Under the pieces are notes generated by a model, which saw nothing but the letters and a program-made list of their open reading frames with translations, ran no database searches and had not been told where the DNA came from. Shown piece after piece: positions 1-3,750 of a DNA stretch of 64,000 nucleotides (its first letter is position 1; each line of letters begins with the position of its first letter). The DNA lies in NCBI GenBank assembly GCA_023334545.1, contig JAADVB010000024.1, forward strand, positions 1 through 64,000. Direction: 5' to 3'. The position numbers and the translations under genes are program-made. The stretch is from Salisapilia sapeloensis CBS 127946. Its lineage: Eukaryota; Protista; Oomycota.

Positions 1-1216
1 AGAGAAGCCGGATAAAGTCATGATGTACTGCACTGGAGGTATCCGGTGTGAAAAAGTTGGTGCCTACGTCCGTCAGCATAAGCAGATCGACAATGTCCAG
101 AAGCTGAAAGGAGGTATCGTCAGCTACGCCAACTATGTCAACGAGCAGGAAAGCAAGCCTCGATCTCTCTTCCGAGGCAAGAACTTCGTCTTTGACCAGC
201 GCTGCGTCACTCGGACACCATCCACCAGCGGCGAAGAAGTCGATGCGAACCAAGTCACAGATGACGTCCTGGGCAAGTGTTTCCAATGTGGAGCGCCTTG
301 CAACCAACACACCAACTGCAGCAATGACATGTGTGGGAGACTCATCCTTCACTGCAGTGATTGCATATCAACTCTATCGAATGCATGCAGTGAAGCGTGC
401 AAGCAAGAGCATGTAAAGATGAGAAAGATGGATCTATTCACTCGTCGACAATACCGAAAGCAGAACGCAAGTAAATGGAAACCTACGATCCCGAACGCAC
501 TTCCTATCCATACGCAGCTAGCAGCTTACTCTACTTCCAACAACAACCAGAGCAAATCCCCTAAGGAGCATGAGTACTGCAAAGATCAAAGCACAGCACT
601 TTCAGATGCGGACCTCTTGCATGAACTACGGGAGCAGACTCTAGCATCTTGGTCCAAATCGCATCAAATGGTCGATGAGTCTCAAGGTCAGCTTCTACGG
701 TTTCTCGTCAGGTCTTTAAACGCCAAGCGTGTGCTGGAGATCGGTACATTCACAGGGTACTCTGCACTCTGTATGGCAGGTGGACTCGATTCCACCGGTT
801 CAGTGGTCACCTGCGATGTTGACCCTGCCGCTATGAAAGTTGCACAGTCTTTCTTCCGCCGGAGTAAACATCATATTGATGGCCGTGTAACGGACGGCTT
901 GGAGGAACTAGCTCGTCTAAAGGATGAAGCTCATCAGTTTGACTTTATATTTGTTGACGCGAACAAGCGCAAGTATGGAGAGTACTACAACGCCATCATG
1001 GATCAAGAGTTACTAGCCCCCAATGGTTTACTCGCTTTTGACAATACTTTATTTCGTGGGCGAGTAGTGGCGAGTGCGAATGGAGAGGCTAGTCATAAAG
1101 AACGTATCGCTCGATCTGTCCGAGACTTCAATGCGCTTGTCGCAAAAGACGTACGTACGATCCAGATACTTCTACCGCTTTGGGACGGCCTCACGCTCAT
1201 TCGACACCAGAGTTGA
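1..1216 (+). CDS. trhO: TrhO/YceA (UPF0176) rhodanese-type tRNA uridine-34 hydroxylase domain fused to a cation-dependent class I SAM O-methyltransferase (CCoAOMT/COMT-like, Methyltransf_3); 5'-truncated
   Basis: Frame is open from the window start (EKPDKVMMYC...). TrhO motifs: YCTGGIRCEK, LKGGIVSY, FRGKNFVFDQR and the Cys-rich Rhodanese_C cluster CFQCGAPCNQHTNC..C..LILHCSDC....ACSEAC. From about nt 566 in the same stop-free frame, OMT motifs: LLHELREQT, VLEIGTFTGYSAL, DFIFVDANK, LLAFDNTLFRG, WDGLTLI. Confidence 0.9.
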   Translation, partial: EKPDKVMMYCTGGIRCEKVGAYVRQHKQIDNVQKLKGGIVSYANYVNEQESKPRSLFRGKNFVFDQRCVTRTPSTSGEEVDANQVTDDVLGKCFQCGAPCNQHTNCSNDMCGRLILHCSDCISTLSNACSEACKQEHVKMRKMDLFTRRQYRKQNASKWKPTIPNALPIHTQLAAYSTSNNNQSKSPKEHEYCKDQSTALSDADLLHELREQTLASWSKSHQMVDESQGQLLRFLVRSLNAKRVLEIGTFTGYSALCMAGGLDSTGSVVTCDVDPAAMKVAQSFFRRSKHHIDGRVTDGLEELARLKDEAHQFDFIFVDANKRKYGEYYNAIMDQELLAPNGLLAFDNTLFRGRVVASANGEASHKERIARSVRDFNALVAKDVRTIQILLPLWDGLTLIRHQS

Positions 1217-1565
1217 CTAGCGAAATAGATCATACAATGTGGTTGGGTTTCTAATGCGTTACTCTTGTATCTTCATGTAACCTCCATCGCCAGTATCGTT
1301 CTTGAAAAGGCTCATGGAAAGTCTAGCACATGTCGCGAAGATACCACGACGTCGGTTAAAGTTGGATGAAGTCGGGGATATGTGAGTCCTGAGATGCTAG
1401 AGTGCCATTTCGAGGCATCGTATCGTCGCCAAACGGTGGAAGAATGAAAATTAGAACATTGATACATAGAAGATGTACCGATAGAGCATGCTATTGGTGA
1501 TAACTGTATTCTGTACTACGATCCGACTATGCTACCAGCTCCTTCATCCGACCTCGACTCCATCC

Positions 1566-1635: not shown

Positions 1636-3750
1636 ATGGTATGGAAAATGCTTTCCAAGGTGCTCAGCATCTGCTTGATCATCCTAGCGATGCATCAAGC
1701 CGATGCAACCTGTCGGCAAAGACGTGTGCGTAAATCATACGACCGAATGAACACGCGTGAAAAGACCTTGTTCCGAAATGCCATCCAGGATGCCATGGAC
1801 AGAGGTTACAATATGAGGTTTACGGAAATCCACATGGAGTCGCAATCCGAGATGCAAGCGCATCAAGTCTGCACCTTCATCTACTGGCACAGAGCATTCC
1901 TCCTTGGTTATGAGAATATGTTACGCAGTCTCAGGCCAGAGTACGAGTGCTTAACGGTGCCATACTGGGATACGGTAACCCATTCGGCAAATGAAATGGA
2001 CGGCGACTGCTCGTCTACGGAAGGATGCTCCCCAGTCGTAGGTGACCTTGGTGGAACTCAAGTCGGCATTCAGACACCAGCCACGTTCAGAGTTAACGGC
2101 CGTCGCCAGCCGACCGGGTACAGGTGTGTTACTAGTAGCCCGATGGATCACTTTTGCCAGGATCGCTTTGCCTCGGGTGATGACTGCTACCAATGCCTTC
2201 CTCGTGAAAATCTTCGCAGTAGAAGTCTTCCATCCGCAGTGACTTTCAACTCGGTCTATCGCCAACTTTTTTCACAAGAAGCCTTTAATGACTTCCGCCC
2301 CTTGCTCGAGTATGGCATGCACAATTCGATGCATAACAACATTGGAGGGTCCATGGCTACCTTCCAAGGCACTGGTGATCCTCTTTTCTGGGTTCACCAC
2401 TCTTTCGTCGATCTCTTGGCTTCACTTTATTACTTCTGCCATGGTGTAATGGGTCGCCTATCATCACAAGAAATGCGTGATAACATTTACTCGTTCCAAA
2501 CATGCGAGAGTCGTAGTGGTGGTGACGTCACGGCAGACACCGAAATCACATTCAGAGATGGTGGATGGACTAGTGAACTACCAGCTGCGTCTGTCTGGGA
2601 CCCAAGTCACGATCTGTACCCGTTCTTTGAAAACGTTCCACGCAGGTTCTCCGAGCTTGCGGATATAAGTCAGCTCGGTGAATCTACGTACACGTACAGT
2701 GTTGGTGGTCTCATGCTCTACCTGATGCGCAACTGCGAGGACTCAAACAGAAATATTGCCGAACGTCGTCTAAGTGAGATGGCGATGATGATGAATGCCA
2801 CGGAGGTTGGTGACAACAACGATGCTGGATGTGACTTTTATGGTGGCAAAATTAAGAAGGGGGTGACTCCCGATCAAAAGAAGGACATGATGAAGGACCT
2901 AGTAAAGATTAAGAAAGATCTTGAAAACAGTCCAGAGGGATGTCCATTCGATTTGGATGCCACCGAAGAAGAGATCGATAAGGCTCCTGCTACCGTCAAG
3001 ATGCAGCAGTTTACCAAGGAAGTAGAGGCGAGACTCTATAAGAAGAAAAAGCAAGATGAAGGGAGCGACATTACGCGTGCCATGGAGATTGATGACGCGA
3101 GTGCTGCCGCTAAAGACCATGACGACATCCTAATTGAAATTGAGCGCATGACGTGCATGTACTACGAAAAGTGCTTGTACGGTACGCCAGACTACTCGCC
3201 CGAGTTCAAGGAAGCATTTGGCGTGACAGATCCGCCTGCTTGCAAGCAAATTGTGGACGAAATCAAGGCCGATACTACCGGTGAAAAGCAATTGAAGCTA
3301 CCAAACTGGGATAAGGTTTTCACCAAGTATTTCAACTGTCCGAAGGAAGAAGGCGTAGCAGCGTATGTCAAGTGGGGTGATGAGATTGGCGACGATACGA
3401 CTGATGGTCTTTTCGATCCAGAAAGCAGTGGTTCTGGTGCTCTGGATATCGACATTGGTGATGCTGAGGGTATCACAGACGATCTGGTTGAAGTGGGAGA
3501 TGACTTTGACAATGCTGACGAGGATGACACAACTGCTCCAGTCGATGGTGATGATAATGTCAAGGATGATGGCGTCCCTGAGAATGACACGCCCGCATCA
3601 GTGGATGCAAGCGATGATATCGATGATGGCGATGCTCCTGAGGATGACACACCTGCCCCAGTTGAAACGGGTGATGAAGATGCTGATATAGACCAAGACG
3701 ATGACTTCTTTGAGGACGGCGGAACGGATTTTATTGGTGACTTTAAATAA
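1636..3750 (+). CDS. Secreted tyrosinase (type-3 dicopper oxidase) with Cys-containing C-terminal domain and acidic tail
   Basis: Signal-peptide-like MVWKMLSKVLSICLIILAMHQADA (ATG 1636; the track's 1597 start is a TTG). CuA: EIH..AHQVCTFIYWHRAFL. CuB: MHNSMHNNIGGSM..DPLFWVHHSFVD. All six His ligands are present. Confidence 0.92.
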   Translation: MVWKMLSKVLSICLIILAMHQADATCRQRRVRKSYDRMNTREKTLFRNAIQDAMDRGYNMRFTEIHMESQSEMQAHQVCTFIYWHRAFLLGYENMLRSLRPEYECLTVPYWDTVTHSANEMDGDCSSTEGCSPVVGDLGGTQVGIQTPATFRVNGRRQPTGYRCVTSSPMDHFCQDRFASGDDCYQCLPRENLRSRSLPSAVTFNSVYRQLFSQEAFNDFRPLLEYGMHNSMHNNIGGSMATFQGTGDPLFWVHHSFVDLLASLYYFCHGVMGRLSSQEMRDNIYSFQTCESRSGGDVTADTEITFRDGGWTSELPAASVWDPSHDLYPFFENVPRRFSELADISQLGESTYTYSVGGLMLYLMRNCEDSNRNIAERRLSEMAMMMNATEVGDNNDAGCDFYGGKIKKGVTPDQKKDMMKDLVKIKKDLENSPEGCPFDLDATEEEIDKAPATVKMQQFTKEVEARLYKKKKQDEGSDITRAMEIDDASAAAKDHDDILIEIERMTCMYYEKCLYGTPDYSPEFKEAFGVTDPPACKQIVDEIKADTTGEKQLKLPNWDKVFTKYFNCPKEEGVAAYVKWGDEIGDDTTDGLFDPESSGSGALDIDIGDAEGITDDLVEVGDDFDNADEDDTTAPVDGDDNVKDDGVPENDTPASVDASDDIDDGDAPEDDTPAPVETGDEDADIDQDDDFFEDGGTDFIGDFK
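3511..3690 (+). repeat. Three imperfect 60-bp (20-aa) tandem repeats in the tyrosinase acidic tail
   Basis: GAGGATGACACAACTGCTCCAGTCGAT / GAGAATGACACGCCCGCATCAGTGGAT / GAGGATGACACACCTGCCCCAGTTGAA recur at an exact 60-nt period (EDDTTAPVD, ENDTPASVD, EDDTPAPVE). Confidence 0.85.

Follow-up and report, generated by a model that had tools for sequence, protein, structure and literature searches.

A TrhO-methyltransferase fusion gene in the oomycete Salisapilia sapeloensis and its possible role in wobble-uridine modification

Do eukaryotes carry xo5U-type modifications at the tRNA wobble position? The question was posed in 2019, from the same gene fusion that is considered here. Among the clues to the identity of TrhO, Sakai et al. 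(2019, Nat Commun 10:2858, PMC6599085, Fig. 3b) gave a yceA-trmR fusion found in Phytophthora sojae, P. ramorum and Phaeodactylum tricornutum, and their discussion takes trhO homologs in eukaryotes to suggest xo5U-type modification there. The fusion itself is only listed in that paper, with neither an assay nor an analysis of its O-methyltransferase (OMT) half. The Results and the Fig. 3b legend call the three organisms "bacterial species", a label that may be the reason why the eukaryotic nature of the fusion drew little attention. A literature search for yceA together with Phytophthora found this paper only, and the literature searched contains no report of mo5U or cmo5U in eukaryotic tRNA, nor of any assay of a TrhO-OMT fusion.

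The window analysed here, 64,000 nucleotides of Salisapilia sapeloensis DNA, opens inside such a gene. A first-pass annotation, made from the sequence letters, had read it as a TrhO hydroxylase joined to a TrmR-like methyltransferase and knew of no description of the fusion. The 2019 paper takes precedence on that point, and also on the suggestion of xo5U-type modification in eukaryotes. Judged by sequence comparison, the window gene is a new ortholog of the published fusion: its domains follow one another in a single open reading frame as they do in the Phytophthora and Phaeodactylum genes; its product groups with the Phytophthora proteins in the trees of both domains; and over 100% of its length the product shares 52% identity with the protein of P. 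sojae (P0013) and 50% with that of P. ramorum (P0012). It differs in coming from another oomycete lineage.

The fusion gene and its transcript

The 3' part of the gene occupies positions 2-1213 of the forward strand, a stop-free frame of 404 codons closed by a TGA at 1214-1216. The window's 5' edge cuts the gene, and thus its own N-terminus lies outside; what remains of this nuclear oomycete gene is its 3' two thirds. As first described, a single frame joins a TrhO rhodanese to an O-methyltransferase, and both domains are recognized by Pfam and NCBIfam models.

The C-terminal end of the rhodanese domain (2-172, forward strand) carries the active-site loop CTGGIRC at nucleotides 29-49, within the motif YCTGGIRCEK that can be read from the sequence at 26-55. 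Residues 2-69 of the window protein match positions 164-226 of the 229 in the NCBIfam TrhO equivalog, NF001133 (E 1.1e-21). This fragment scores 77 bits against the equivalog cut-off of 170, because the N-terminal two thirds of the TrhO protein described by the model lie outside the window. The Cys-rich Rhodanese_C domain follows (173-403, forward strand; Pfam PF12368), matched over all 66 profile positions by residues 58-134 (E 6.7e-18). Next comes a Ser/Asn/Lys-rich, poorly conserved linker (404-559, forward strand) which, counted from the Pfam end of Rhodanese_C to the first helix of the OMT fold in the structural model, is about 50 residues long rather than the 30 or so first estimated. 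The cation-dependent class I SAM O-methyltransferase domain (560-1213, forward strand; PF01596) is complete, as had been claimed: residues 198-402 match positions 3-203 of the 204 in the Methyltransf_3 profile (E 2.5e-47; 161 bits against a cut-off of 22). Its SAM motif, LEIGTFTGYS, is read at 734-763, and its metal ligands are an Asp at 956-958 and an Asp-Asn pair at 1040-1045. Across 48 fusions, the spacing between TrhO and OMT domain motifs ranges from 191 to 321 residues.

Three small sequencing runs of one organism, each labelled "RNA?" (X1, X2, and X3), bear on the transcript. A 1734-nt contig of X1 covers window positions 1-1246 with no gap or mismatch, and reaches 488 nt upstream of the window. 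Because this one contig spans both domains, they most likely reside on one unspliced mRNA. Transcripts that separate the domains had been named beforehand as evidence against the fusion; the X1 contig contains both halves. Contigs end at 1246 (X1), 1290 (X2) and 1283 (X3), that is, 30-75 nt past the stop codon, and these ends define a 3' untranslated region and transcript end at 1217-1290 on the forward strand. Downstream, read depth is about zero (gap 1255-1590) until the contigs of the next gene start at 1588-1605, a transcript-like pattern.

Two further observations concern these reads. At window positions 283-324, X2 and X3 contigs of 315-316 nt share just these 42 bases with the gene and diverge over about 255 nt, and read depth doubles; the contigs probably represent the transcript of a paralog with the same Cys-rich Rhodanese_C stretch. 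The window itself contains no second TrhO copy. Separately, contigs from another organism (organism B; run X5, from 2025) are 95-96% identical to window positions 1-417 and 803-953, in the TrhO and OMT parts respectively, and therefore represent the same gene in a close relative.

The TrhO half

Escherichia coli TrhO (YceA) is an oxygen-dependent tRNA U34 hydroxylase, with solved homologs 9j5o and 4f67. Two elements are common to E. coli TrhO and the window protein: the CTGGIRC loop, including all six residues that Sakai et al. give as mutated (C200, T201, G202, G203, R205, and C206 in E. coli); and the Cys cluster of Rhodanese_C. The loop is found in every full-length fusion examined. The Cys-rich region of the window protein aligns to residues 203-319 of 9j5o, and eight Cys columns are invariant across 28 aligned TrhO-domain sequences (20 TrhO halves of fusions and 8 stand-alone TrhO paralogs). 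Full-length fusion orthologs also possess the N-terminal UPF0176_N domain (PF17773), and they exceed the TrhO equivalog cut-off of 170 bits, with 184.9 for P0006 and 173.8 for P0013.

Unlike E. coli TrhO, the window gene is eukaryotic and fused to an OMT, and its orthologs carry a presequence-like N-terminal extension. In 21 fusion orthologs, the TrhO domain reaches its conserved start only after 28-96 residues, of which the first 25 are Arg-rich and presequence-like, with 3-8 basic and 0-2 acidic residues. These features support a predicted organellar location for the fusion, in line with the mitochondrial suggestion of the first-pass annotation.

In a TrhO tree rooted with six Bacteroidota outgroup sequences, the window protein falls within the peronosporalean oomycete clade (SH-aLRT 99), and the eukaryotic TrhO halves stand apart from the outgroup. 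The closest prokaryotic TrhO proteins, also from Bacteroidota, are only 35-39% identical.

Prokaryotic loci were inspected for the same pairing of functions. No PF01596-like ORF lies within 10 kb of trhO at the best 80 prokaryotic trhO loci (from GTDB species genomes, almost all Bacteroidota), and no trhO is present at five bacterial loci that encode the closest stand-alone OMTs. Four metagenomic fusions that at first appeared possibly bacterial all proved eukaryotic, either through their neighbours (RCC1-HECT; Mito_carr and Cullin; BCCIP) or through split exons. A prokaryotic TrhO-OMT fusion or operon is accordingly rejected for the loci examined, so the functional link between the two activities comes from the eukaryotic fusion alone.

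The methyltransferase half

Bacillus subtilis TrmR (YrrM; 5zw3 and 5zw4) methylates ho5U34, and the first-pass annotation had called the window domain TrmR-like. The two proteins share the PF01596 fold. The window OMT retains equivalents of the TrmR SAM contacts G62, S68, E85 (Asp in the window), and D133; of the Mg ligands D133, D159, and N160; and of K136. Numbered along the 218-residue window domain, these positions are G62, S68, D86, D133, K136, D161, and N162. Residues G62, G66, D133, D161, and N162 are invariant across 60 aligned sequences, and S68 and K136 are present in at least 90% of them. TrmR positions were mapped by offsets from the Glu-85, Ser-68, and Asp-133 numbering in Ryu et al. 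(2018), rather than by direct alignment to TrmR.

The tRNA-binding residues are a different matter. TrmR Arg-86 and Arg-90 bind tRNA and are conserved specifically in TrmR orthologs; these were reported from Firmicutes alone, the one group in which sequence neighbours of TrmR were found, and are estimated at about 3% of PF01596 (Ryu et al. 2018). Their equivalents in the window OMT are Val87 and Ala91, and across 32 fusions these positions hold Ile, Val, Ser, or Leu and Ala, Thr, His, or Val, respectively. Similarity to TrmR as a whole is slight: the OMT half scores 54 bits (E 1.6e-13) against B. subtilis TrmR 5zw3 and 70 bits against 8k1f, an entry named tRNA 5-hydroxyuridine methyltransferase, and both rank below more than 30 sequences of small-molecule OMTs. 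The Firmicute TrmR cluster is delimited by more than about 40% identity and E below about 1e-41 to B. subtilis TrmR, and the OMT half falls outside it. This placement relative to TrmR draws on PDB and Swiss-Prot rankings together with the residue numbers of Ryu et al. (2018).

Better matches are found among CCoAOMT-like enzymes: Coxiella 3tr6 (122 bits), Legionella 3r3h (115), SafC (114; 5lhm and 5log), human COMTD1 (109; 2avd), Synechocystis 3cbg, and MdmC. As a group these best matches score 100-122 bits, with TM-scores of 0.85-0.90 and 30-37% identity. An AlphaFold model of the OMT half has a mean pLDDT of 97.1, and no TrmR entry appears in its top 30 Foldseek matches in Swiss-Prot or its top 50 in the PDB. 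Thus, "TrmR-like" was an overstatement: the domain is nearer by sequence and by fold to CCoAOMT/COMTD1-type small-molecule OMTs, and is without Arg-86 and Arg-90. From these comparisons we infer a CCoAOMT/COMTD1-type enzyme, rather than a TrmR ortholog or a descendant of Firmicute TrmR.

The CCoAOMT-like enzymes are all stand-alone proteins, and their known substrates are small molecules, whereas the fusions add the TrhO half and a Lys/Arg-containing loop insertion. In the window OMT, His-Lys-Glu-Arg occupies domain positions 179-182, roughly the region of TrmR Arg-178 and Arg-181, although the loops differ in length and the equivalence is approximate. Lys180 occurs in 16 of the 32 fusions and Lys or Arg182 in 25, inside the insertion; the closest bacterial OMTs have gaps there. 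The proximity of Lys180 and Lys/Arg182 to tRNA-binding positions of TrmR is suggestive. A basic residue at position 166, after the Asp-Asn pair, was also considered as diagnostic of the fusions: 31 of the 32 have Arg or Lys at this position, and the closest bacterial OMTs have Gln, Ser, or Gly. It was rejected because Coxiella 3tr6 shares the Arg.

Oomycete fusion OMTs come together as a single clade in the OMT tree (SH-aLRT 95). The closest stand-alone proteins in a large protein database are cyanobacterial OMTs of about 280 residues (42-49% identity, 147-157 bits), including those of Gloeothece PCC 7424 and Oscillatoria FACHB-1407, but these fall outside the clade of fusion OMTs, in one of their own, and have no trhO nearby. 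At the cyanobacterial loci (L005 4769-12840 and L006 4751-8275), the OMT is accompanied by a DHQ-synthase-like gene and an ORF of ATP-grasp size, and in the Gloeothece locus, L005, by an NRPS gene as well. This layout looks like that of a mycosporine-like amino acid (shinorine) cluster.

Distribution of the fusion and its paralogs

A search of a large protein database found the fusion in Phytophthora, Pythium, Globisporangium, Aphanomyces, Saprolegnia, Achlya, Albugo, Vitrella brassicaformis, and many uncultured eukaryotes. These proteins are 590-700 residues long and share the order UPF0176_N, Rhodanese, Rhodanese_C, Methyltransf_3. The window frame is 50-55% identical to the Phytophthora and Pythium fusions over 99-100% of its length, and its best identity to any protein in the searched database is at most 60%. 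Restriction of the fusion to a single assembly had been raised as a possible objection; instead, its conservation extends through Peronosporales, Pythiales, Saprolegniales, Albugo, Vitrella, and uncultured eukaryotes. It is a conserved gene, not an assembly quirk.

Some oomycetes have a second TrhO gene. A TrhO-only paralog of 420-439 residues, with a presequence-like N-terminus of its own, lies directly upstream of the fusion in divergent orientation in Pythium oligandrum (L001 6416-7678, reverse strand) and in P. sojae (L003 6503-7822, reverse strand). No such upstream neighbour is present in Aphanomyces. In the TrhO tree, paralog and fusion cluster by genus; identity is 76% within the P. 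oligandrum pair, compared with 61-65% to Phytophthora fusions. This genus-wise clustering points to gene conversion or repeated duplication as likely explanations.

In downy-mildew gene models of the fusion (P0023, P0040, P0050, P0076, P0042, and P0051), either the CxGGxR loop or the entire TrhO half is missing, whereas the neighbouring TrhO-only paralog persists. This domain loss could be real. Similar gaps occur in some Phytophthora and Pythium models (P0024 and P0022), however, and annotation error may equally be the cause.

Proposed function and alternatives

The Rosetta-stone logic of the first-pass annotation is sound, as is its two-domain reading: TrhO and OMT domains are confirmed, and the fusion has been kept in oomycetes, a chromerid, and other protists. 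This suggests a two-step model, in which the TrhO half would use O2 to hydroxylate wobble U34 to ho5U, and the tethered OMT half would methylate the new 5-hydroxyl to form mo5U. Because the orthologs carry presequence-like N-termini, the substrates would likely be organellar (mitochondrial) tRNAs. Any ho5U methylase activity of the OMT half would have been recruited independently of Firmicute TrmR. Synthesis of mo5U is something that we infer from the domain fusion alone. We regard formation of ho5U and then mo5U on organellar tRNA as the most likely function, with a probability of about 0.5. Against this function, the fully mapped mammalian mitochondrial tRNAs are not known to contain xo5U, though animals have TSTD2, and therefore eukaryotic TrhO-family proteins may have another substrate.

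Might the protein act instead on a small molecule? The OMT half could methylate a catechol or enediol, with a TrhO-like half that does not hydroxylate tRNA. Such a role would suit the closeness of the OMT half to catechol, CCoA, and mycosporine-type OMTs and to COMTD1, the missing TrmR arginines, and the next gene, a tyrosinase whose product would be one possible substrate. The tyrosinase gene (1636-3750, forward strand; PF00264, E 9e-27) encodes a protein that starts with a signal-peptide-like hydrophobic stretch and ends in an Asp-rich tail; it shares synteny and 44% identity with the gene that follows the fusion in P. oligandrum. However, no tyrosinase adjoins the fusion in P. sojae, in Aphanomyces invadans, or in two metagenomic eukaryotes, whereas the TrhO partner is kept far more widely. 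The order in the window is common only to P. oligandrum among the loci examined, and we read it as local synteny rather than as functional linkage. Moreover, the fusion and the tyrosinase lie on separate contigs on either side of the depth gap at 1255-1590, and the start of the tyrosinase (signal-peptide-like, as judged by eye) contrasts with the Arg-rich presequence-like starts of fusion orthologs, which suggests different compartments. Full-length orthologs also pass a curated equivalog model with their TrhO half. We consider a small-molecule substrate unlikely, though well worth keeping in mind.

Of similar standing, and likewise improbable in our estimate, is the notion that hydroxylation and then methylation take place on RNA at a site other than tRNA U34: a pyrimidine in rRNA, in mRNA, or at another tRNA position. 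In favour of a different RNA target are the undocumented state of xo5U34 in eukaryotes across the literature searched; the statement in a 2023 review that nothing is known of TSTD2 function; and the absence from the OMT half of the anticodon-loop contacts made by TrmR Arg-86 and Arg-90. Set against these, the sole TrhO-family members to have been assayed act on U34 (Sakai et al. 2019, PMC6599085), the TrhO halves of orthologs score above the equivalog cut-off, and we see no positive sign of any other RNA target. Finally, some public models split the two halves or lose the rhodanese loop (in Bremia, Plasmopara, Hyaloperonospora, and Peronospora), as would be expected if the fusion were an assembly or gene-model artefact of two separate genes. 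But the window contains a single uninterrupted frame, one X1 contig from an "RNA?" run spans both halves, the same architecture recurs in dozens of independent genomes, and the split OMTs nest within the Phytophthora fusion clade of the OMT tree. An artefact is thus extremely improbable.

Implications

For the question posed in 2019, the window adds one ortholog; one spanning "RNA?" contig that argues for a single mRNA; and a caveat about the OMT half, which is no TrmR ortholog. That caveat raises a further idea, one that we judge a long shot. An independently recruited CCoAOMT/COMTD1-type OMT would represent a separate eukaryotic lineage of ho5U O-methylases, and the two-step modification of RNA could also be performed by unfused relatives. 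One candidate pair in animals would then be COMTD1, a mitochondrial, substrate-orphan protein whose molecular function a 2023 study describes as not established, and the TrhO homolog TSTD2. For xo5U-type wobble modification in eukaryotes, the fusion is the best genetic handle.
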